The notes below the pieces were generated by a model that saw only the letters and a program-made list of their open reading frames with translations, ran no database searches and had not been told where the DNA came from. From Iphione sp. A-MEVVRFRX5 (Eukaryota), in the NCBI GenBank assembly GCA_976226885.1, contig OZ320320.1, forward strand, positions 66,030,001 to 66,094,000: a stretch of 64,000 bases of DNA, read 5' to 3'. Below are positions 19,701 to 42,143 of the stretch, piece after piece. A program made the position numbers and the translations under genes. Each line of letters opens with the position of its first letter. Within the stretch, counting starts at the first letter, position 1.

Positions 19701-21053
19701 TCATCGGCGAGCAGCTGCGGCCACCATGTTACACAGTGTGTCGAGCTTCTCGTCCATGCCCTTGAGTCGCTGCTCCATGTCTCCGACGCGCGCCTTTAGC
19801 TCCTGCTGGCGCAGGTCGAGCTTGAGGCAGGCCTCGTGCATGTTGTTCTGCATCTTACTCATCTCAACCAGGGTGATGGAGCTGTCCATCAGACGGCGCT
19901 GCTCCTGCTTCACCTCGCGGATGGAGTGGATGGCCTTGAGCAGCTTGCGCTGGTGCTTGCGCACCACGCTCGTCTTATGGAGCTTCTTGTTCTTGTAGAT
20001 GAACCAGCCGGCCTTCAGGATGTTAGCCGCAGCGTGCTTGTAGCGTTTGTCCAGTTCCACGTCGATGACGAAGTTGTGCACGTACTTCTCGGCGCGCGAC
20101 AGCTCGAGCTTGCGCGCCAGCACGGCGACAACGAGCGCCGTGCATCCGGCACCGAACACGCCGGTGAGGACGGCGATGCCGCGACCGCAGTACGAGTTGG
20201 GCACGATGTCGCCGTAACCTACGGAGAGGAAGGTGATGGCGATGAGCCACATGGAGTTGAGGAAGTTGGCGTGCACCTCGTCGTGGTACATCTCGCAGGC
20301 GCGTAGCAGCCAGCTGGAGATGACCAGAGCGGACGTCATGAGAACGGTCAGCACGTACTCGGGATAGAGCGTCATCATCGACTTGAAGATGAACTTGAAG
20401 TTGAAGTGGATACGGTTGAGCGCACCCAGACTCTGCGAGGAGGCATCCGTGAAGAGCTTGCTGTGAAGCATGAGCACGCGGCACAGGAGGTAGAAGCGCA
20501 GGAACATTGGCATGGAGAAGATAACGTCGACGGGCACGATGACATGCGTGATCTCGTGCCGGTTGGCGTCGAGATTGGCCATGTCGAAGTCGTAGTCGCC
20601 CGGGATGGGATGGATGGCGTACGTGGTCAGCTCGATCATGATCTTCAGCACTCGCTTGCGCGACATGGCGAGCCGCCAGTCCTCCACCGAGTTGTCGCAC
20701 ATGAAGAGCTTGACGTCGAGCGCGTGGTACCACACGACGAAGCCGAGCAGCGTGACGGTGGAGATGGTGATGCAGGACTTGACGAGCAGCGAGGCCGTGT
20801 CGGATTTGGTGTAGACGCCGCCCATGAAGAGCTCCGTCTCGGCCACCATCAGCACGATGCCCACCATGGCGAAGAAGAGCGCAAAGTCGCACACCACGCG
20901 CCGGCGCCGGAAGAGCTCCTTGCGCTTGGCAAGGCGGTATCCCACGTTGTCGTACTTCCTCTCCGGCTTCTCCGAGCTGTCCTGTGTGTACCGGGCGAAG
21001 CCGCCATTGCGACCCACCAGTGGGATGCCAGGGTCCTCCACCACGGTCGTCAT
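19701..21053 (-). CDS. KCNN: Small-conductance calcium-activated potassium channel (SK/KCa2-like), 450 aa, single coding exon
   Basis: Six hydrophobic TM segments, S4 region FLRFYLLCRVLMLHSKLFTDASSQSLGALN, pore WLIAITFLSVGYGDIVP, S6 GAGCTALVVAVLARKLEL, calmodulin-binding domain AEKYVHNF...AAANILKAGW...KHQRKLLKAIH, and a C-terminal coiled coil. The ORF is uninterrupted from ATG to TGA. Confidence 0.97.
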   Translation of the reverse strand: MTTVVEDPGIPLVGRNGGFARYTQDSSEKPERKYDNVGYRLAKRKELFRRRRVVCDFALFFAMVGIVLMVAETELFMGGVYTKSDTASLLVKSCITISTVTLLGFVVWYHALDVKLFMCDNSVEDWRLAMSRKRVLKIMIELTTYAIHPIPGDYDFDMANLDANRHEITHVIVPVDVIFSMPMFLRFYLLCRVLMLHSKLFTDASSQSLGALNRIHFNFKFIFKSMMTLYPEYVLTVLMTSALVISSWLLRACEMYHDEVHANFLNSMWLIAITFLSVGYGDIVPNSYCGRGIAVLTGVFGAGCTALVVAVLARKLELSRAEKYVHNFVIDVELDKRYKHAAANILKAGWFIYKNKKLHKTSVVRKHQRKLLKAIHSIREVKQEQRRLMDSSITLVEMSKMQNNMHEACLKLDLRQQELKARVGDMEQRLKGMDEKLDTLCNMVAAAARR

Positions 21054-31576: not shown

Positions 31577-33010
31577 TTATACCTCCTCGTCCCCACCCCC
31601 TTCCTCGGTCGTGTGATCGAACTGCCTCCGCCTTATACTTAATGCAGTGAAATAATCACTGATACGGAAAGCCACCTGCTACAGACGAAAAAATGGCTTC
31701 CCGTAACAGATACGGAGAGATTGGCGAGGAAATTGATTTCGTAATCGTGTTCTCATTGATATCTGGGGAAACAATATCTCTAGAGCAGAGATAAAGTGAC
31801 AGTCTAACTTAACACGTCCATAATCCTCAAGTTCTAATATTCGCGCTGCACTAGTTCGTTTTCCTAATGAGGCGGTGTTGGCAAAAGGCTCTCTGCAATA
31901 CTATTCCGTATTATAGCTTCTTAAATATAAATACTCTGCATAAATGTCTATCTTTACTCAGTAGTAAGCCAGAAGGAACGTTTTGCTGTGTACAGCCAAG
32001 CTCCATCCCCTTCTTCTGGAAACCGCAAGTGCGACAACATTAGAGTAGCAATGGTAAGAGTAGAGATCGATTGTGAAAACTGCAATTTCATATGCCTGTA
32101 TTTTTCAGCAACGTTTCAAAACCGCGACCTATCTAACGTTAATGGTATGTGGAAAGTGTTTTGTCAACGTTCATTTTCCGCTCTGATAACCTAAGATAGA
32201 GACATATACATCCTTATTTTGGTCGCCGATGTTAGGTGGGCGATCTGTCTTGCTGAGTGGACGTGGGAGGGAAGATCTGGATCTAGACTAAGAATAAGCC
32301 ATAACATACTGTTCAGTCGACACACCTTTCGTTTATGACTACTGATGCATTAGCAGGTATAGGAGGCCCTTACCCCGAGGGACTCATTGCCTTTGCGGTA
32401 GTTCTACTCCAGATACATTGGTACTGCTTTAATAATTTCTAAATATATATATGACATCGCGGGCGGAGGATTGGGGTGGTCATCTCTGCTTGCCGTTGAG
32501 ATCGGACGACGCCGCCGACGGGTGCAGCTGTCAGCAGCGTATGGTGGGCGGGCCACTCTCAAAGGTCAGCGCAACCAATTTCCTGCCCGCTCTGCATCAT
32601 GTAGAATGCACAGATCAATCTACGTTTAGGGGAAGGAGGAAAGGTTTTGGGGGGTTGTATGTGCAGGTGGAGAGAGGTGGCCTCCTGTGTCAGTGACCAG
32701 CGGGAGACGGGCAGCAGGCAATGCGCACATGAAGCCTGCTACCAGCTCAAGTACAGAGGCTACCACCTGTAGACCGCACGCAGGGATTTACCACTATATA
32801 TATCCTGGATATGACGTATATGCAGATATAGATGATGACGTATCTGTTGTATTGCTATGTAACCTTAGAGCATTTGTTATCACTAAGCAACATGTTCCTT
32901 CCATGACGTTTCGTATGTATAACGCATTCACTTCAATTTTTTAGTGTGATTTGAATAAAGAGAGTTTGTTTCACTCCACTCTGCTTGTTGTCTACTCAAT
33001 CTATGTATAT

Positions 33011-33298
33011 TGTTGGCGGAGGGTTGTTACTTGTTGTGTTGGCGGAGGGATGTTACGTGATGTCGGAGGGATGTTCAGGAAAGGGGCGGAGGGACGGGAA
33101 GTTTAGTCTGGATTTGGCGGAGGGGCGGAGGCGCGGAGGTACCGCGGAGGGATTTGTTTGTGTATATAAGTGCGAGCGGCGGAGGTCGGAGTTGAGTTGT
33201 TGTTGGATTGTCGTTGCATGTGCTCTTCAGAAATAAATTACAAGTTCATCTTTACTCGCGGAGTGGAACTTCTTTATTCATAATGGCGGAAGCTAACA
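33011..33298 (+). repeat. 5' LTR (288 bp)
   Basis: TGTTGGCGG...GCTAACA. It is identical to 41828-42115 except at 33085/41902 (G/A) and 33180/41997 (C/G). TATATAA at 33163-33169 and AATAAA at 33232-33237. Confidence 0.97.
33016..33264 (+). promoter_or_regulatory. Array of GCGGAG(G/T) motifs in the LTR promoter
   Basis: GCGGAGG starts at 33016, 33042, 33086, 33117, 33125, 33133, 33144 and 33179, and GCGGAGT at 33258. Near-matches TCGGAG(G/T) at 33063 and 33186. The motifs are seen directly; their function is inferred. Confidence 0.7.
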
Positions 33299-33299
33299 T

Positions 33300-33317
33300 T
33301 GGTGGCAGCGGTGGGAT
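33300..33317 (+). other. Primer-binding site complementary to the 3' end of tRNA-Leu
   Basis: TGGTGGCAGCGGTGGGAT, 1 nt after the 5' LTR, is the reverse complement of ATCCCACCGCTGCCACCA, the 3' end of metazoan tRNA-Leu(AAG/UAG). Confidence 0.88.
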
Positions 33318-33390
33318 ACGGCGCCGAGGAAGGGACCAGGAAACTCAGGACCCTTCATCTGCTAAGCACTCGGCGTCGGCCCGACGGCCC

Positions 33391-34539
33391 ATGGAAGGAG
33401 ACGAACCCGAGAGAAGAGTAACTCGTAGTGGAGGAGGAGGGCGCTGAGCAGACGACGTGGAGGGACAACAAGGAGGAAGGCCCGAGCGGCCGGCTCGGAC
33501 CCCATCCCGCTTGTGGGGCGGCGGGGAGGGGACGGAGGCAGACGGCCCTCAGGGCCCGACTGCGGAGGCAGCGGAGGCAATTCCCCCGCGGGAGCCCCAG
33601 GATGCGGTGGCACCCGCGGGAAGGTCCACAGCGGTGGACGGAACTTTCTCTGAGTCCAACTCAGATCCCGAACTGGATATTACCAGCGGTGAGGAGTCGG
33701 CGGAGGAGGAGGAGGAAGTCGCCGTGGTGGAGGTAGGTGGGGCTCAGCGAGGCAGGGTCAAGCCAGAGTCTTTTGATGGGACCCAGGATTGGGAGGACTA
33801 CCTCCACCACTTCAACTTAGTGGCGATGGCAAATAAGTGGGGAAACCGCGAGAAAGCAGTGCAGCTGGGAGTTTGCCTCCGGGGTCCGGCGCGGGCAGCC
33901 ATGAGAGCAGCTAGAATAGATGTCAACGCACGGGCGGCATTCCGCACCCTAGTCAAGACATTGGCCGCAAGATTCCAGTCCCCTGAGCAGGTTGACCTCT
34001 ACAAGCAGAGACTCAAGTCTTACAGGCAGAAGGTCGGGGAGGACCTCCTCCAATTAGCCGATGAAGTAGAGCGCTTAGTTCGGAGGGCTTACCCCGGGAT
34101 CAAGGGCCATTGGGCGGAGGAGCTATGCCGAGAGAGTTTCGTGCAGGCGGTGAGGGACGAGCGCATCAGGCAGTGGATCGTTCAGAAGAGGGTGGAAGGA
34201 TTCCGGGCCGCAGTTTCCGAGGCAGCCTTTGCAGAAGCTTACTATAAAAACCGGGAAGAGAGGGAAGGTAGGAAGAGCACAGGCAGCAGTGTCTGAGCGG
34301 GGTGCAATGTGATGGTGACAGAGGAGGTGAACAAGGTGGCACCAGGGCCTACCCCCACAGCAACGGAGGAGCTACTCCTGAAGTTGGCCGAACGCATCGA
34401 AAGTCTGGAAGGGAAGTGGAAGACTTCGGGAAGTCAAAAGAAGACGGGATGTTTCCGTTGCGGGAAGGAGGGGCACTTTAGACGGGAGTGTCCAGAGAAA
34501 CCTAAGCCGGCGGAAAACGACAAGCCGTCCTCCCAGTAG
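33391..34539 (+). pseudogene. gag: gag (capsid-like region plus CCHC zinc knuckle) with two in-frame TGA stops
   Basis: ATG at 33391 is in the same frame as track ORFs 33457-34296 and 34309-34539, with TGA at 33445 and 34294. It contains PESFDGTQDWEDYLHHF...ANKW...LRGPA and CFRCGKEGHFRRECP. Confidence 0.9.
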
Positions 34540-37500
34540 GGGGAGAGGGAGACACGGCGGAGGAGCTCATCCCCAGGGTTGCGGTGGCAGAGACGAGAAG
34601 CGGAGGAGAAGATTATAATACGGGAGACGAGATAAGCGGGGAGATGGACCGAAGATCAGGGACTCTCACGCTGACTGGAACGGTGAGGGGGCGGCCACTG
34701 ACGTGGTTGGTGGACACGGGGGCCTCCGCGACTATTATTGCCCCTCAGGTCGCGGAGGAGGTCGGGCTGCAAGTTCGACCGAGGCCAGGACAGAGGATCG
34801 TGGGCGCCGACGGCCGCCCCCTCCAATGCAATGGTGAGACCGAGCTGGAGGTCCAATTTCAGACGACGAAGTGGTTGATCAAGGCGTTGGTCGCGGAGGT
34901 GGAGTACGCCGCCATCCTGGGGATGGACGTCCTCCGCCAGCGAGGAGCGGTGGTGGACACGGCAAGGGGGGTCCTTCGCCTCCCCGCCGGGGATCCCCCT
35001 TCTGCCGTCGTACGGGTAGCCAGGGACGTGCAGGTAGCTGCCAGCGGGAGGAGTGTCATCCCAGTAATAGTGGAGGGAGCGGAGGCAGACCACTGGATGT
35101 TGGAACCTGAGAGGCGGTTCGAAGTGGAAAACGGCTTGCGGGTACCCCGATCGTTGCTGCCGGGAAGGGTCGAGGAGACGGCCGTCCTGTGCATGAACAC
35201 GTCAGCGGAGGGACGTTGGTTACGGAGAGGAGCTACCGTGGGACGGGCGGAGGCTGCGGAGTCACCAGAGGCGACGAAAGGAACAAGGTTGGAGGACCCC
35301 GAGGCAGGAGGGGAAGTCGTCCAAGAATTAATGAAGACGGTGTCAGATGAATTTGCGGAGGATGAGAGGGAGGCCCTTCGCGAGGTGCTGTGGGACCATA
35401 GGAGGGTGTTCCAAACTAAGGATGGAGGAATGGGACGGACGGACTTGATCCAACACGAGATTCACACGGGGGACGCGGAACCCATTCGGCAGCGATTCCG
35501 GCGGCTCCCTCCTCATAAGCGCAGGATTGTCGAAGAGGAAGTGCAGAAGATGGTAGCGCAAGGGGTGCTAGAACCCTCGCGGAGCCCGTGGGCCTCCCCC
35601 ATTGTTCTGGTCAAGAAAAAGTCAGGGGAATGGCGGTTCTGTATTGACTTCAGACGGCTGAACGAGAAGACACGGAAGGACGCATACCCGATTCCCCGGG
35701 TCGACGACACCCTGGATGCTTTGGCGGGGGGAAAATACTTCTCCGTTATAGATTTGGCCTCAGGATATTGGCAGGTGGAGGTCAAGGAAGAAGACCGAGA
35801 GAAGACCGCGGTGTGCACCCCGGGGGGCCTTTACCAATTTAAAGTCATGCCCTTCGGGTTATGCAATGCACCCTCGACTTTCGAGAGACTGATGGAGGTT
35901 GTGCTTTGTGGACTGATAGGTGAGGGGTGCCTCGTGTACCTCGATGATGTGATCATCATCGGCTCGACCGTATGACAGATGTGCAGCCGACTTGGGGAGG
36001 TGCTTGGTAGACTGGAGGAGGCGGGAATGCGAGTGAAACCGAAGTGCCAGCTGCTGCGGAGGGAGGTGACCTATATCGGACACGTAGTCTCCGCGGAGGG
36101 AGTTCGACCAGACCCCGAGAAGGTGCAGGTAGTCGCGGAGTGGCCGGAGCCTGCCTCGGTGAAGGAAGTGCGAAGTTTCCTGGGACTCGCGTCCTACTAC
36201 AGGTCCTTCATTCGTGACTTCGCGCGGAGGGCGGAGGCACTGCACCGGCTGCTGGAAAAAGGGAAGAAGTTCGAGTGGGGGGAAGATCAACAGGCCTCGT
36301 TTGCTGATCTGCGGCAATGCCTCGTTACGGCCCCCATCCTGGGCTTCCCGACGTCAGAGGGTCAGCTTATCCTGGACACCGATGCCTCCGCGGATGGCCT
36401 GGGAGCGGTACTGTCCCAGCGACAAGCAGAAGGGGAGCGAGTGTTGGCCTATGCGAGTCGTACCCTCACCCGACCCGAAAAGCGCTATTGTGTCACCAGG
36501 AAGGAGCTTCTGGCGGTGATCTTCGCCTTAAGGAAGTTTAAGACGTACGTGTCAGGAAGGAAGGTGGTTATCCGCACGGACCACGGCAGCCTCCGCTGGC
36601 TGATGCACTTCCGCGAGCCCGAGGGGCAGATGGCCCGCTGGTTAGAAGAAATCTACTGCCGTGATGTCGACATCATCCATCGAGCAGGACGGGTGCACAA
36701 CAACGCAGATGCTTTGTCGCGGCGACCGTGTCGACAATGTGGCCGTCCAGAGGGAGTGTCGGAGGAGGAGGACGATTGCGCGGAGGGGGTCTTCGCACTG
36801 CAAGTTCTACCGGTAGTGCAGCCCTCAGAGATAGCAGCAATAGTCGACAAGGACGAGCATCTGAGGGAAGTGTTGCGCCGCCTGGAGGAGAAGAACGGAC
36901 CGCCGGAATGGGGGCCTGAAACCACGTGGGAGGAGAGGAGGCTTCTCATGGAGTGGAGTAGGCTGTCAGCCGATCGGGGGCAGATAACAAGACGTTGGGC
37001 GGCGGAGGACGGGCGGACTTGGCCCCAGACGTTCGTCCCTGAAGAGCTGCGGAAGACCTGTTGGGAGGAGGTGCATTCAGGGGCCTTTGGAGGACATCTC
37101 GGGCCAGTCAAGACAGCCGGTTTGCTACGCACGAAGTTTTTCTGGCCGGGACTGAGTCGAGACGTGCAACTGTGGGGAGGAAGCTGCCCGGTGTGTCTAG
37201 AAAGAAGAAGCCCTCCGCGGCGGAGGCGCACACGACTACAGCAACGACAGCCTGGGGGACCGTGGGAATTAATAGCTGTGGACGTCTTAGGCCCTTTCCC
37301 CGAAACAGAACGCCAGGCCAAGTACGTGTTGGTGGCATGCGACCATTTTACTAAGTGGGCGGAGGCGTTCCCCTTGCGCACACTGGCTGCGGAGGAAACT
37401 GCCTCAGTGCTGGTACGGGAGCTTATCTGCCGCTTTGGCCCTCCGCGGGTCATTCACAGTGATCAGGGAAGAAACTTTGAGGCGCGACTGGTGGCGGAGG

Positions 37501-38276
37501 TATTACGGCTGTGCGGAGTAGAGAAAACACGGACCACCCCCTATCACCCTCAGGCCGATGGACAGGTGGAGAGGTTCAACCGGACCTTGCAGCACATGTT
37601 GGCTACCACGGTGCAGGAGCACCAGGGGGATTGGGACCTGCGACTCCCGTACGTGACGGCAGCATACCGAGCTACGCCCCATCGGACCACCGGCTACTCG
37701 CCGAACTTCCTCGCCCTCCATCGGGAAACCACGCTACCACTACAGCTGGCTTACGGAGGACCGGAGTCAGCGGAGGAGGGAACACCCTCCGAGTTTGCTG
37801 GGGAGCTTCGAGATCGGGTCCGCGCAGCGCATCGGCTGGCCTTCCAGCGGATGAAGGAGGGGATCGCGCGGCAGAAAGACTGGTACAACCAAAAAGTGCG
37901 GCCGATCGCGTACAGTGTGGGGGAGGAGGTGTACGTGTTCCACCCCATCAAGAAACAAGGGCTGTCGCCGAAGTTACAGCGATTCTGGGGTGGCCCATGG
38001 ATTGTCCAGGAAGCCTTGTCAGAAGCAGTGTATCGGGTGAAGAAAGGGCGGAGGGAGCGAGTCGTCCACGCTGACCTACTGAAGCCAGGGCGGAGGGCCT
38101 CCGCGGAGAGGGCTGCGGGGAATCCCCCAGCTGAGGCGACCGTTACAGTAGCGAGCGCACGGCGGGAAGTCATAGCCAATCGCTGTGAGGCGGAGGGAAG
38201 CCAGCGGTACCTCCGCGGGCGCACCGCTATAAAACCGCGTGAGGAGCCATCGGTCGAGTCACTACGAATCCCATGA
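34506..38276 (+). pseudogene. pol: pol: aspartic protease, RT, RNase H and integrase; one in-frame TGA in RT
   Basis: The -1 frame relative to gag is open from 34506. Motifs: LVDTGAS (PR), SPWASP...CIDFRRLN...PFGLCNAP...YLDD (RT), DASADGLGAVL...TDH...NADALSR (RNase H), HSGAFGGH...CPVC, DVLGP, HSDQG, QVERFN (IN) and RFWGGPW (GPY/F). TGA at 35973. KPKC lacks one residue of the usual KPxKC. Confidence 0.95.
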
Positions 38277-38285
38277 CCAAGAAGG

Positions 38286-41200
38286 ATGCCACGACGGAGG
38301 TCCAGCGATGACAAGCTCAAGTGCCACAAGTGCTCTTATGTGTGCGACAGAAAGGATAACCTGAAGCGCCATATGAAACTTCATGCTCAGTATGGGTACG
38401 CGTGGGGTTGCCCGTCGCAGCGATGCCCCGAGAAGGTGTTCCAACGGAAAGACGATCTACGGCGGCACTTAGAGACTAAACAACATGACGCGGAGGGAGG
38501 CGTTAAGCTGATGAGGAAGTCACGGGAACGGTATTACCAGTTCTTCAAGGTGGAGGGGTCCTCCGTGCTGAGAGGAAGGCCCGCCGACCCGTCCGTGGTG
38601 GAGGGAAGCCCACGGCCCGCCCCCAAGAAGAAGCAGGCTCAGCAGGAGAAGGCGGAGGCACCCTCCACGGAAAGCGAGGCCGAAGAGGGAGAGGAGTCGG
38701 CGGAGGTTGCGACCACTTCGGAGGACGCGGAGGACGATCAAGACGACTGGGAGCCCCAGCCCTCCACCTCGTCTGCAAGAAGCCCTCCATGACCCCCGCC
38801 CAAGAAGAAAGTAAGTAAAACCAAGAAGGGTGCGCAGCAGCAGCCCCCGGCCCCGACCGGCCACGGCGACCCAACTCCGACCGATGAGACAGAGAAGTCC
38901 CCACGTTCGCTGTGCCGCGAGTTGAGAGACACGATTACGGGGTTGGAAACCAGGCATCCCGCCACGCCGGCCAGTTCCCCGGCCACGGTGGCCAGGCTGG
39001 TGGAGACAGCCGACAAGTTGGAACGGGCGATGCTCGGGTCCCCAGCATCTGGGGTTGTTCTGCGGAGCAGCCCCCTCGCTAAACGACGACTAGCGGAGGA
39101 CCCGAAGAAGTCGGAGGGGGCCAAGCGAGGTCGCGGTAAGGGCCCCACCCTTTCTCCGCTGGTAGGTCGATTAGGTGGGCAGCTCCCAAAAGTGCCGTCG
39201 CCGCTTCTGATGGAGGAGAGGACCCCACCAGCCCTACCAGCGGAGGCGGCCTCCCCTAGGCTCGTTACCCCGGAGGTCGCCAAGACGAAGACGGGGCGCA
39301 TTTCTGCACTGTCGACACCCAGTATGCCGCCGACCCCGGAGAACCTTTCTGAACTAGTCAAGCGCATGCAGGAAGAAGGGGGCCCCCGAGCCCCCCCCGC
39401 ACGGGTGGACGAAGTGGCGGCGATGTTTAAAGCCATGTTCGGTGACTCCATCGTCGTATCAGTCCCGGCCGGTGACGGGGCAGGGAGCACGGAGAAGGTG
39501 GGGAGTTCCTCGGAAGAAGAGCTTGCGGCCAAGCTTCCGGCCTCCGGGGATGACGAGGAGGCCGCCCCTGGAGACCAAGAACTTGCTGGACCCCCCGAGC
39601 TGCAGTACGTTGAGGTGGGTGGAATATTGGAAGTGCACGAAGCCGTCACGCCGGAGGCCCCTCCTCGAGTCTCGACTGAGCCCCCCCGGGGGGCTGACGA
39701 CGTGCCCGGGGCGGGCCCGGACCCCAAGAAGATGGCTGCGGAGGTGCTCCAGTGGGAGGCACAACAGGCGATAGCGACGGTCCGGGCCATGGAGCTCCGA
39801 CAGGAAGAACAAGAAGAGGCAGCGGAGGGCAGGCCATTAGCCCGGCCTGAGCTCCCGGGGGCGCCCTCGACTGTGGCGCGGAGGGCTACCACTCCTCCGG
39901 GGATCCCTTCGGGCACGGGGGAAAGCTCAGAACCAATCCAGGGAGGGCCTCCGCTGACAGGCCCATCACGGCAGGGGGGGCCCCCGCCGCCGGGCACCCC
40001 GAGAGCAAAGCAGCCGATGCCCGCAGAGGGACCGCAGGAGGAACCGGTCGAAGAGGGAGCACCACTGGACCAGCAGCCGATCCTCTCCCCGGCCTTACCA
40101 CAGGGAGGGGAAGAGCATGAGGAACCAGCCAGGCCGGCGCCCGCGGTCCTTGAGGAAGGCAGGAAGGTGACGGAGGCCAATACCCTTGGGCAGGAGCTCC
40201 CTCCGCGACCGGAGGGAGACGAACACGGGGGGGGTACCCGGCCGGTCCCTCCCCACGACGGGCGGCGCGGGAGCGGTCTCATAGGCGACACTCACGGGGC
40301 GGGGCCTCCGCCACGAAAGAGGGGCGAGCAAGAAGACGGAGGCGAACCAGACCCTCTCCTTGGCGACCAGCGGGGAGGCGGCTTGCAAGGCGACGTCCAG
40401 GAGGCGGAGACCCCTCCGCGTCAAAAGGGCGATGAACATGGGGAAGGGGCCAGGCCGGCCCCCCCTCAGGTCGAGCCACACGAGACCAGCGCGGGGGACA
40501 GTACCCAGGAACCCGACCCCTCTACACAACCGCGGGCGAGCGAGCCTGAGGGGGAGAGTGAACCGACCCGGCCTTCCGTCGAGAAGCGCGGAGGCGGCGC
40601 AGAGCTCCTTCCACGACGGAAGGGAGACGAACACGGGGAGGAGACCAGGCCGGTCCCTCCCCACGTCGAGCGGCGCGGGACGGGCGCGGAGGGCGATATC
40701 CAAGAGGCCGAGCCCTCTCTGCGACCGAGGACGGGAGAACCGGAGGAGGGGACCAGGCCGGTCCCTCCCCGCGGTGGGCCGCACGAAGGGGTTTCACCGG
40801 GCACGACCCCGGAGAAAGACCCCCCTCCATGACGGAGGGGAGATGAATACGGGGAGGAGACCAGGCCGGTCCCTCCCCACATCGAGCGGCGTGGGACTGA
40901 CGCGGAGGGCGACACCCGGGGAGCCAGGCCTTCTCCACGACGGAGGAAGGGCGGGCGAGGGGAGGAGACCAGGCCGGTCCTTCCCCGTGGCGAGCCGTTC
41001 GAAGGGACCTCGTCGGGCACAACCCCGGAGACAGAGCCCCCTCCACGACCGGGGGGGGACGAATACGGGGAGGGGACCAGGCCGGTCCCTCCCCACATCG
41101 AGCGGCGTGGGATTGGTGCGGAGGGCGACAACCGCAGGGCCAGGCCCTCTCCACGACGGAGGAAGGGCGGACAGGAGGAGGAGACCAGGCCGGTCCCTCC

Positions 41201-41816
41201 CCGCGGCGGGCCGCACGAAGGGGCCTCGTCGAGCGCAACCCCGGAGAAAGAGCCCCCTCCACGACGGGGGGGGGACGAATACGGGGAGGGAACCAGGCCG
41301 GTCCCTCCCCACAACGAGCGGCGGCTACCGGCAGCGGACTCCGCCCTTCAACTGGCGGAGGGCGGAGGGGCCACGGAGCAGACTACCACACCGCCTTCCT
41401 CGGGTTCACACGGCCCGGAGAGGCGGCAATGGCGAAGGACGATATCACGGGAGGCGGCACGACGGCCGAGCGACGATCGGCAGGAGGCGGAGATATGGGC
41501 CCGATGGGCAGCAGCGCGACAGATCACGTGTGATGCCGACCCTCCGCGGGGGTGGTCGATAAGGACAAGCAAGGGCCGTAGCCGGTTGGCCCGCAGTGCT
41601 GACGGACTAGTTATAGGAGTACGTCATGAACTCTCTCTCGCCCGGGAGGCGGAGGCAGCTGACGCCCAAGCACTGTCCCGGTGGTTTGGTCGATCCACGG
41701 AGATCCCCGAAGAACTGAGCTTAGAAGAGTTTATATTTGAACTTAGCGTAGATAAGGATTGTGCCGTTGTCGAAGCAGACGAAGTGTTTAGTGTTACTCG
41801 GGACGAGTTTGTCTAA
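38286..41816 (+). pseudogene. ORF3: ~1176-aa non-env protein with 2 C2H2 zinc fingers, NLS-like motifs, acidic/Pro-rich region, tandem repeats and a C-terminal domain; two in-frame TGA stops
   Basis: Track ORFs 38286-38792, 38922-40832 and 41586-41816 share one frame. I translated the gaps and the only stops are TGA 38790 and TGA 40830. Fingers: CHKCSYVCDRKDNLKRHMKLH (38322-38384) and CPSQRCPEKVFQRKDDLRRHLETKQH (38409-38486). PKKK occurs twice. The final TAA overlaps the PPT. No signal peptide or TM segment is visible. Confidence 0.85.
40600..41320 (+). repeat. Coding higher-order tandem repeat: 108-bp (36-aa) units paired into 216-bp (72-aa) units
   Basis: AGGCCGGTCC (RPV) recurs at 40647, 40755, 40863, 40971, 41079, 41187 and 41295, exactly 108 bp apart, and alternate units are more similar. 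Looser copies lie near 40239 and 40452. Confidence 0.9.
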
Positions 41817-41827
41817 GAGGGGGGCAG
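41815..41827 (+). other. Polypurine tract
   Basis: AAGAGGGGGGCAG immediately 5' of the 3' LTR. Confidence 0.88.
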
Positions 41828-42111
41828 TGTTGGCGGAGGGTTGTTACTTGTTGTGTTGGCGGAGGGATGTTACGTGATGTCGGAGGGATGTTCAGGAAAG
41901 GAGCGGAGGGACGGGAAGTTTAGTCTGGATTTGGCGGAGGGGCGGAGGCGCGGAGGTACCGCGGAGGGATTTGTTTGTGTATATAAGTGCGAGCGGGGGA
42001 GGTCGGAGTTGAGTTGTTGTTGGATTGTCGTTGCATGTGCTCTTCAGAAATAAATTACAAGTTCATCTTTACTCGCGGAGTGGAACTTCTTTATTCATAA
42101 TGGCGGAAGCT

Positions 42112-42115
<4 letters not shown>
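41828..42115 (+). repeat. 3' LTR (288 bp)
   Basis: 286/288 identical to the 5' LTR and followed by the TSD ATAT. Confidence 0.97.

Positions 42116-42143
<28 letters not shown>
42116..42143. repeat. (AT)n microsatellite abutting the 3' LTR
   Basis: Direct reading; its first 4 bp form the TSD. Confidence 0.9.

Follow-up and report, generated by a model that had tools for sequence, protein, structure and literature searches.

A Ty3/Gypsy retrotransposon with a gene for a predicted two-finger protein that matches a word in its own DNA

Does a retrotransposon encode a protein that reads the DNA of the element itself? This question was raised by a stretch of 64,000 nucleotides (hereafter the window) from Iphione sp. 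A-MEVVRFRX5 (assembly GCA_976226885.1, contig OZ320320.1, positions 66,030,001 to 66,094,000, forward strand), which contains a Gypsy-type element with an extra gene, ORF3, downstream of pol. An earlier note, made from the sequence alone, claimed that ORF3 starts with two C2H2 fingers whose predicted site, GCGGAG(G/T), is arrayed in the LTR, and inferred that the element encodes its own sequence-specific regulator. We confirmed the observation, and a comparison with relatives collected from public assemblies (designated L followed by a number) supported the interpretation. Based on sequence features and the recognition code, ORF3 most likely encodes a self-recognising DNA-binding regulator. 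We found no published description of such a system.

As shown in Table 1, the element has the organization of a Ty3/Gypsy (Metaviridae) retrotransposon. The two LTRs are 99.3% identical, with 2 mismatches, and the nearest pol proteins are Gypsy-type at 44-51% identity. ORF3 starts 9 nt after the pol stop and is not a 168-aa gene, since the same frame stays open to 41816 (about 1,176 codons) and is interrupted by two stops. With the stop in pol, this copy has three in-frame stops and could at most make the 168-aa finger domain alone.

Table 1. Features of the element (positions in the window).
Position	Strand	Feature	Basis
33007..33010		Target-site duplication ATAT (5' copy); the 3' copy is at 42116-42119, inside an (AT)n microsatellite	Read from the sequence; TRF reports (AT)14 at 42116-42143
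33011..33298	+	5' LTR, 288 bp, TG..CA; TATATAA at 33163-33169 (LTR position 153), AATAAA at 33232-33237	Alignment with the 3' LTR
33016..33150	+	U3 array: seven GCGGAGG upstream of the TATA box (33016, 33042, 33086, 33117, 33125, 33133, 33144), plus one TCGGAGG	Word counts
33179..33264	+	Sites downstream of the TATA box: GCGGAGG at 33179 (16 bp after the TATA start), TCGGAGT next to it, GCGGAGT at 33258	Word counts; L126 has a GCGGAG at the same offset from a near-identical TATATAAG..CGAGCG core
33299..41827		Body-wide seeding in the internal region: 42 GCGGAGG on the + strand and 13 on the - strand; about 34 of the 42 sit in the coding frame as Ala-Glu, written GCG-GAG	Word counts and shuffles
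33300..33317	+	Primer-binding site TGGTGGCAGCGGTGGGAT	The same 18-mer follows the 5' LTR in L001, L002 and L003
33457..34296	+	gag (capsid-like), in a frame different from pol	Weak PNMA and Retrotrans_gag matches, below the curated cut-offs
34584..38276	+	pol: protease, reverse transcriptase, RNase H, integrase; in-frame stop at 35976-35978, just after the YLDD motif	Pfam hits to gag-asp_proteas, RVT_1, RT_RNaseH, Integrase_H2C2, rve and Integrase_p58_C; ORF list
38048..38234	+	Candidate internal promoter for ORF3: five motif copies (38048+, 38090+, 38098-, 38190+, 38210-), including the palindrome CCTCCGCGGAGG; TATAAAA at 38228, 58 bp before the ORF3 ATG	One of three internal 200-bp windows tied at 5 sites; one of only four TATAWAW boxes on the + strand of the element
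38286..38792	+	Intact N-terminal piece of ORF3 (168 aa, ATG at 38286) up to the first internal stop (38790-38792), with both fingers and a basic KKK stretch	Translation
38322..38384	+	Finger 1, C-X2-C-X12-H-X3-H; helix RKDNLKR (-1 R, 2 D, 3 N, 6 R), code GAG with G/T as the next base	Pfam zf-C2H2; best PDB matches CTCF ZF3 and Ikaros ZF3
38409..38483	+	Finger 2, C-X4-C-X13-H-X5-H; helix RKDDLRR (-1 R, 2 D, 3 D, 6 R), code GCG	Alignment with tandem C2H2 pairs and Zif268 finger 1; helix core RK.DL..H shared with L126, L002 and L003
38793..41816	+	Rest of the ORF3 frame: low-complexity Pro/Glu/Ala-rich region, second internal stop at 40830-40832, natural stop at 41814-41816	Translation in frame; no Pfam domain
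40601..41323	+	Tandem repeats of 216 bp (72 aa), 3.3 copies, inside ORF3	TRF
41469..41813	+	C-terminal region of ORF3, weakly conserved across the clade; ends here in an acidic, hydrophobic tail	Alignments; AlphaFold2 pLDDT only 62; no Pfam hit
41815..41827	+	Polypurine tract AAGAGGGGGGCAG	Similar tracts before the 3' LTRs of L001 and L126
41828..42115	+	3' LTR, 288 bp, with 8 GCGGAG; one of the two LTR mismatches removes a copy	Alignment with the 5' LTR; word counts

We first examined whether the two fingers are of a type known to read DNA. Finger 1 was matched by Pfam zf-C2H2 at 27.6 bits against a cut-off of 25.2. Finger 2 was missed by Pfam, but it aligns ligand for ligand with tandem C2H2 pairs and with Zif268 finger 1. 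AlphaFold2 modelled both as beta-beta-alpha units, with pLDDT of about 92 and about 78, respectively, and all top Foldseek hits were tandem C2H2 DNA binders, including the two-finger proteins ZFP57, ZBTB10, ADR1 and Tramtrack. The linker AQYGYAWG, however, has 8 residues from His to Cys and is not TGEKP-like, although its G-aromatic-x-C end is conserved in the clade, the spacing of finger 2 is unusual, and two fingers alone give low affinity. The helices match the GAG and GCG modules RSDNLVR and RSDDLVR (PMC5260015) at positions -1, 2, 3, 4 and 6. The recognition code, which is a rule of thumb, therefore reads the pair as GCG-GAG-(G/T).

This predicted word is the commonest word of the LTR. 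The 5' LTR holds 9 GCGGAG, all on the + strand (8 GCGGAGG and 1 GCGGAGT), whereas dinucleotide shuffles gave a mean of 0.26 GCGGAG (largest 3 in 1000) and 0.10 GCGGAGG, and GCGGAG and GCGGAGG are its commonest 6-mer and 7-mer. The internal region is 63% G+C with G at 36%, and three or four body copies come from the 216-bp tandem repeats, so an artefact of base composition or repeats had to be considered. The earlier note had raised the G-richness as a caveat. The enrichment held under dinucleotide, synonymous-codon and codon-junction-preserving shuffles, it held in gag plus pol alone without the ORF3 repeats (30 vs 9.8; 9 vs 1.2), and equally GC-rich relatives showed nothing for these words. 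This explanation was thus rejected.

The word is also seeded through the coding sequence, which the earlier note had missed. When protein sequence and codon usage were kept, GCGGAGG was the most over-represented of all 7-mers in gag, pol and ORF3 (41 vs 11.5, z 10), and its reverse complement was also high (13 vs 2.4, z 7.3). Both survived a shuffle that preserves codon junctions (41 vs 17.2, largest 27 in 1000; 13 vs 3.3). Ala-Glu is written GCG-GAG in 37 of 46 cases, while Ala elsewhere uses GCG in 25%. The sense-strand excess, 42 vs 13 in the window element and 25 vs 12 in L126, might suggest that the motif acts in the RNA, as a purine-rich splicing enhancer or an export or packaging signal, with the fingers as an RNA-binding or protein-binding module. 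C2H2 fingers can bind RNA. This is very unlikely. The reverse complement is itself strongly enriched (z 7.3 and 5.9 in the window element, z 4.7 in L126), the antisense form is the enriched one in L127, antisense sites occur in all three codon phases, and the U3 arrays lie upstream of the TATA box and are absent from the 5' end of the transcript. Enrichment in both orientations points to duplex DNA rather than RNA.

A cluster with a TATA box lies just upstream of ORF3, which the earlier note had also missed, although this cluster is tied with two other internal 200-bp windows. L126 has 8 sites in the 200 bp between the pol stop and finger 1, L127 has 5 sites after the pol stop, and L003 has a TATAAAA about 55 bp before its ORF3 ATG. 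In total, 76 GCGGAGK are present in the 9.1-kb element against 8 in 55 kb of flanks, and the element offers the word at about 1 site per 120 bp against about 1 per 8 kb in the flanking host DNA. It is possible, though unlikely, that ORF3 binds its motif with a job other than activation, such as a copy-number repressor, a protein that coats or marks the double-stranded cDNA or provirus for protection, nuclear entry or tethering, or a partner of integrase. The spread of sites through the whole body in both orientations suits a protein acting on the whole DNA molecule, ORF3 abuts pol in the window element and in L126, and broken copies such as this one may make a finger-only product that could compete for sites. 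On the other hand, the densest arrays flank TATA boxes in three elements, and selection should not build up sites for a self-repressor to this density. No motif lies near the insertion sites; the nearest are 550 bp and 1.8 kb away in the window, and the L126 flanks hold 1 in 9.5 kb. Integration is therefore not aimed at the motif.

Relatives were then used to ask whether LTR motifs co-vary with finger helix residues, the test named in the earlier note. The six elements that carry ORF3 form one clade in the pol tree with 99/99 support, and the finger modules align across them. ORF3 homologues were found in only four assemblies besides the window. ORF3 is a clade-wide gene of roughly 480 to 1,200 codons and not a short peptide, which the earlier note had not recognised. 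L126, from another assembly, has pol 44% identical to that of the window element. Its fingers, RKANRDR and RKWDLLR, keep the same -1/3/6 residues and give GCG-GAG. The L126 LTR has 6 GCGGAG around TATATAA against 0.2 expected (0 of 2000 shuffles reach it), and GCGGAG is the top 6-mer of the body (23 vs 6.9), with CTCCGC at 9 vs 2.4. L127, the sister of L126 (pol 63% identical), has Asp instead of Arg at position 6 of finger 2 (REEDLLD) and Ser instead of Arg at position -1 of finger 1 (SKYNRER), which give CCG-GAn. The top 6-mer of its LTR is CCGGAG (6 vs 0.19) and that of its body is CTCCGG (12 vs 2.3), while GCGGAG is not enriched in the body (12 vs 9.0). Counts of NCGGAG were G 83, A 15, C 14 and T 11 in the window element, G 49 in L126, and C 40 and G 13 in L127. 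Base 7 follows position 2 of finger 1. With Asp2 in the window element it is G in 70 and T in 6 of 83 sites, and with Ala2 in L126 it shows no preference (A6, C16, G14, T12).

Fingers and motif therefore co-vary as the code predicts. The window element and L126 may share fingers and motif by common descent, so independent co-variation rests mainly on the L126/L127 contrast and on base 7. In gag plus pol of L001, L002, L003, L125 and L128, neither GCGGAG nor CCGGAG was enriched, and L125, the one relative examined without ORF3, has no LTR array. L001, L002 and L003 have LTR arrays but non-canonical finger-1 helices and long linkers, and L001 lacks finger 2. Their LTR words are not enriched in the body, so the model cannot be checked there.

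These comparisons also bear on whether the arrays are sites for host transcription factors, for example GC-box, EGR, E2F or YY1-like proteins, with the match to the fingers a coincidence and ORF3 doing something unrelated. G-rich boxes upstream of a TATA box are common in promoters, fingers with Arg at -1 and 6 always predict GNG triplets so that only 16 GNGGNG words are possible, and other clade members also have arrays of short words in U3. However, L126 and L127 come from the same ENA assembly, presumably one host genome, yet use different words, each matching the element's own fingers, which is hard to explain with host factors. The match of base 7 to position 2 of finger 1 and the lack of an array in L125 also argue against it. 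The conserved core is CGGAG with a variable 5' flank, not the GGGCGG of a GC box, and synonymous-site seeding of the body in both orientations is not expected for host promoter factors. We consider this explanation improbable.

We propose, as more likely than not, that the finger pair docks on double-stranded DNA in the canonical Zif268 geometry and reads GCG-GAG-(G/T). As two fingers bind weakly, occupancy would depend on site density, which restricts the protein to copies of its own family. The most likely consequence is family-specific positive control of expression; binding, expression and the direction of the effect are inferred. ORF3, with its finger pair, long disordered repeat-rich middle and weakly conserved C-terminal region, would be made from the internal promoter, feed back on it, and then switch on or keep open the LTR promoter and the element body. 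The acidic C-terminal tail is not conserved in relatives and is weak evidence for activation, and sites inside coding sequence are not needed by a plain promoter activator. The CpG observed/expected of the host flanks is about 0.8, so heavy CpG methylation is unlikely, as judged without epigenomic data.

It is about as likely as not that a whole lineage of animal Ty3/Gypsy elements carries a re-programmable self-recognition system, in which protein and word co-evolve so that each family switches on, or shields from silencing, only its own copies. That would be the first retrotransposon and animal counterpart of VANC, and would show that LTR retrotransposons of animals, like complex retroviruses and plant VANDAL transposons, can encode their own sequence-specific DNA-binding regulator. 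The change of Arg to Asp at position 6 with G to C at base 1, and the pairing of Asp2 with G/T at base 7, give a clean natural example of finger residues and target bases changing together. Seeding of sites at synonymous positions is an unusual, measurable form of selection on a transposon and would explain a striking codon-pair bias. If the proteins act only on their own family, they are ready-made orthogonal pairs of DNA-binding domain and site, and would help explain how related families co-exist in one genome.

The ORF3 fingers have the same base-reading residues as Zif268/Egr1 and engineered GNN modules, in which R-D-D/E-R (Zif268 finger 1; RSDDLVR) reads GCG and R-D-N-R (RSDNLVR) reads GAG, and the two-finger repressors CreA and Mig1 show that two fingers can give site-specific binding to words that include GCGGAG (SYGGRG). 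Those are host transcription factors with TGEKP-type linkers, and in a search of its 168-aa N-terminal piece ORF3 shows no similarity to them outside the fingers. Like the foamy-virus transactivator Tas (Bel1), which acts on both an internal promoter and the LTR (PMC4411673), ORF3 is an accessory gene downstream of pol; the element here has site clusters at the LTR TATA box and just upstream of ORF3. The internal promoter is inferred here only from a TATA box and site clusters. Tas is not a zinc-finger protein and shares no sequence with ORF3; a search of the 168-aa N-terminal piece against 1.84 billion representatives found only generic C2H2 proteins, and Pfam found no Tas or Bel1 family in any ORF3 piece. 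Foamy viruses also have env, which these elements lack. Like VANC of the VANDAL (Mutator-like) transposons in Arabidopsis (PMC5735166), for which loss of silencing has been shown, ORF3 is a transposon-encoded protein predicted to recognise a short word that is dense in its own family and rare elsewhere, with site density rather than a single site setting specificity, and related elements have changed protein and word together. VANC belongs to a DNA transposon of plants, is not a C2H2 protein, and has its motifs mainly in non-coding tandem repeats. Here the only recognisable domain of ORF3 is C2H2, the carrier is an LTR retrotransposon of an animal, the specificity of the finger pair can be read from the code, and many sites are written into coding sequence at synonymous positions.

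The element is a 9,105-bp LTR retrotransposon, and the positions of its features and of those found around it and in its relatives are collected in the table below. Its two LTRs begin with TG, end with CA and differ at only 2 of 288 positions. A primer-binding site, TGGTGGCAGCGGTGGGAT, follows the 5' LTR and a polypurine tract precedes the 3' LTR. Pfam found a weak capsid-like gag, followed by protease, reverse transcriptase, RNase H and integrase in Gypsy order. The internal region is 63% G+C and forms an island in host flanks of 43-45% G+C, where CpG observed/expected is about 0.8, unlike heavily CpG-methylated vertebrate genomes. No other copy or solo LTR of the element was found in the window, which has no N runs, and no copy of the motif lies within 500 bp of either end of the element. 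This copy is broken by three in-frame stops, although its LTRs are nearly identical. The 168-aa piece of ORF3 that keeps both fingers is intact, so this copy could make a DNA-binding domain without the rest of the protein.

Coordinates of the features of the element, its surroundings and its relatives
Sequence	Position	Strand	Feature
Window	33011-42115		LTR retrotransposon
Window	33011-33298 and 41828-42115		LTRs, 288 bp each
Window	42116-42143 and 33007-33010		(AT)14 microsatellite into which the element is inserted, with a 4-bp duplication, ATAT
Window	33280-33295		ATAATGGCGGAAG near the 3' end of the LTR
Window	33300-33317		18-nt primer-binding site
Window	35976		In-frame stop in reverse transcriptase
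Window	38228	+	TATAWAW box, 58 bp before the ORF3 ATG
Window	38286-41816		ORF3 frame, starting 9 nt after the pol stop
Window	38790, 40830		In-frame stops in ORF3
Window	1-33010 and 42116-64000		Host flanks
Window	19701-21050	-	Single 449-aa ORF with SK_channel, Ion_trans_2 and calmodulin-binding domains; a small-conductance calcium-activated potassium channel gene or a large exon of one
Window	9738-10637 (+) and 9000-11000		GC-rich stretch (52% G+C) holding a 299-aa ORF with no Pfam match
L004 (copy of the L002 family)	878-1619 and 12107-12848		LTRs, 100% identical
L004	10001-11239 and 11217-11756		Two called ORFs into which ORF3 is split
L127 (relative)	about 1090-1112		Polypurine tract directly before the 5' LTR
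L128 (weak sister; ENA ERZ27283105)	7494-7976 and about 1900-2100		ORF after pol with a C2HC finger plus a C2H2 finger; array of CATATATCC words downstream of a TATA box in the leader

The 5' LTR contains 9 GCGGAG (8 GCGGAGG and 1 GCGGAGT), all on the + strand, and seven of them lie upstream of TATATAA. Dinucleotide shuffles of the LTR gave 0.26 (largest 3 in 1000), and these are the commonest 6-mer and 7-mer of the LTR. ORF3 is in the same frame as pol and begins with two fingers. Finger 1 (helix RKDNLKR) passes the Pfam zf-C2H2 threshold and resembles CTCF finger 3 and Ikaros finger 3. Finger 2 (helix RKDDLRR) has slightly long spacing, but it still aligns at all four ligands with tandem finger pairs and with Zif268 finger 1. 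AlphaFold2 modelled two beta-beta-alpha units, and all top Foldseek matches were tandem C2H2 DNA binders, among them the two-finger proteins ZFP57, ZBTB10, ADR1 and Tramtrack. At positions -1, 2, 3, 4 and 6 the helices equal the engineered modules RSDNLVR (GAG) and RSDDLVR (GCG) tabulated in PMC5260015. As fingers bind antiparallel, the predicted site is GCG-GAG, and in Zif268-type complexes Asp2 of finger 1 is expected to favour G or T at the next base. The earlier note, which had proposed that the two fingers predict the word arrayed in the LTR, therefore read the sequence correctly.

ORF3 is not a 168-aa gene. Apart from the two stops, the frame stays open to its end and encodes the fingers, basic KKK stretches, a long Pro/Glu/Ala-rich region with 216-bp tandem repeats and a C-terminal region that is weakly conserved in relatives. 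Pfam found nothing in the middle and C-terminal parts, and the AlphaFold2 model of the C-terminal region (pLDDT 62) was too poor to search with. A word-indexed search with the 168-aa piece found nothing in the 92-294 aa length range. A full HMMER search of 1.84 billion representatives with the same piece gave 105 hits, all of them generic multi-finger proteins matching residues 4-66, with no homologue of the rest of ORF3. A profile search with a full-length ORF3 alignment, which was swamped by low-complexity words, returned only one near-copy of L002, a relative described below. The shared frame 3 codons after the pol stop suggested that ORF3 might be a C-terminal extension of integrase. This was rejected, because in relatives ORF3 is separated from pol by 0.07 to 4.9 kb, and in the relative L126 it lies in a different frame from pol.

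The word is also seeded through the coding sequence. The internal region has 42 GCGGAGG on the + strand and 13 on the - strand, and about 34 of the 42 sit in the reading frame as Ala-Glu. Ala-Glu is written GCG-GAG in 37 of 46 cases, although Ala elsewhere uses GCG in only 25% of cases. When synonymous codons were shuffled with protein and codon usage kept, GCGGAGG was observed 41 times against 11.5 expected (z 10, the highest of all 7-mers) and CCTCCGC 13 times against 2.4 (z 7.3). When codon-junction dinucleotides were kept as well, the figures were 41 against 17.2 (largest 27 in 1000) and 13 against 3.3 (largest 9). In gag plus pol alone, the 6-mers gave GCGGAG 30 vs 9.8 and CTCCGC 9 vs 1.2. 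Antisense copies fall in all three codon phases. Enrichment in both orientations points to a reader of duplex DNA, and an RNA-level explanation is contradicted by this antisense enrichment and by arrays upstream of the TATA box. Site density is about 1 per 120 bp in the element and about 1 per 8 kb in the flanks.

Only four TATAWAW boxes lie on the + strand of the element, and the one before ORF3 has five sites in the 200 bp upstream, including the palindrome CCTCCGCGGAGG. This is suggestive only, because two other internal windows also reach five sites.

The closest pol proteins in a 5.8-billion-protein collection were only 44-51% identical, and their contigs were retrieved for comparison. 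An IQ-TREE tree of pol gave a clade of six elements with 99/99 support, ((L126, L127), (window, (L003, (L002, L001)))), with L128, an AT-rich element, as a weak sister. The element L125 (P0006 locus), a Gypsy element without ORF3 used as a negative control, lies outside the clade. All clade members have an ORF downstream of pol that opens with the same finger module, but L001 has lost finger 2. The 18-nt primer-binding site is widespread and not diagnostic, and is shared by more than 120 metagenome contigs carrying diverse Gypsy elements. Among the 120 loci found by a metagenome scan with LTR end plus primer-binding site, none has an ORF3-like N- or C-terminus, and pol identity is at most 42% over full length.

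Finger helices, code readings and enriched words in the window element and two relatives (observed vs expected; residues at positions -1, 2, 3 and 6 in brackets)
Element	Origin and pol identity	Finger 1 helix	Finger 2 helix	Code reading	LTR	Coding body
Window	this window	RKDNLKR (R, D, N, R)	RKDDLRR (R, D, D, R)	GCG-GAG-(G/T)	9 GCGGAG vs 0.26	GCGGAGG 41 vs 11.5; CCTCCGC 13 vs 2.4
L126	assembly ERZ25072730; 44% to window	RKANRDR (R, A, N, R)	RKWDLLR (R, W, D, R)	GCG-GAG	6 GCGGAG around TATATAA vs 0.2 (0 of 2000 shuffles)	GCGGAG is top 6-mer, 23 vs 6.9; CTCCGC 9 vs 2.4
L127	same assembly; 63% to L126	SKYNRER (S, Y, N, R)	REEDLLD (R, E, D, D)	CCG-GAn	top 6-mer CCGGAG, 6 vs 0.19, as (C)TCCGGA(G/C) either side of TATATAA	top 6-mer CTCCGG, 12 vs 2.3; GCGGAG not enriched, 12 vs 9.0

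In the engineered CNN modules an acidic residue at position 6 goes with a 5' C; for example, RNDALTE reads CTG (PMC5260015). NCGGAG counts over whole elements were G 83, A 15, C 14 and T 11 in the window, G 49, A 14, C 10 and T 4 in L126, and C 40, T 14, G 13 and A 8 in L127. Base 7 is G in 70 and T in 6 of 83 sites in the window element, where finger 1 has Asp2, while in L126, where it has Ala2, base 7 is A6, C16, G14, T12. L126 has a core promoter close to that of the window element, TATATAAG..CGAGCG..GCGGAG. Both L126 and L127 have clusters of their own word between the pol stop and the fingers or ORF3 start. L127 seems to follow another copy in tandem, sharing an LTR. A host-factor explanation needs two different host proteins in what is presumably one host genome, as L126 and L127 come from one assembly, each matching the fingers of the element it serves. 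Neither GCGGAG nor CCGGAG is enriched in gag plus pol of L001, L002, L003, L125 or L128, and the LTR of L125 has no array. A composition artefact is excluded by the shuffles and by the GC-rich relatives.

L001, L002 and L003 each have a U3 array of a different short word upstream of a TATA box, but their finger-1 helices are non-canonical, their linkers are 10-16 residues long and their LTR words are not enriched in their bodies. Reading the L002 and L003 arrays from their finger-1 helices with the simple code gave no convincing match. Finger 2 of L002 and L003 keeps R/D/R-or-K (code GCG) and their arrays contain GCG, whereas L001 lacks finger 2 and its array lacks GCG, but this loose fit is weak and we do not count it as support. 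The simple code cannot read the L128 fingers either. The pol proteins of L001 and L002 (ENA ERZ25767047) are 93% identical, but their LTR arrays differ completely (GCACCGGGCW repeats against GCGCGT(T)ACG words) and their finger-1 helices differ, which looks like modular exchange of LTR plus ORF3. In L004, gag, pol and the start of ORF3 were called as long ORFs. It looks like a very recent insertion, and the family may still be active in that genome.

The code-predicted word, the top LTR word and the top synonymous-site word agree in three elements and shift together where the fingers differ. The window element and L126 may share fingers and word by descent, so that the independent events are the L126/L127 switch and the base-7 difference. 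We conclude, from indirect evidence only, that ORF3 very probably binds its own element. The downstream function is less certain. The arrays around both TATA boxes and the acidic tail of this element favour positive control, but a repressor role or a cDNA-coating role remains possible.

Full-text literature searches found no report of a Gypsy or other LTR retrotransposon encoding a zinc-finger protein matched to its own LTR. The principle is known from VANC and Tas, but the protein family, the class of element, the animal host and the synonymous-site seeding are new. The body-wide sites favour a density-dependent, element-wide action like that of VANC, in which motif density sets localisation and protein and motif co-evolve (PMC5735166). 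The pairing of the LTR with a candidate internal promoter recalls foamy-virus Tas (PMC4411673) and favours a Tas-like circuit.
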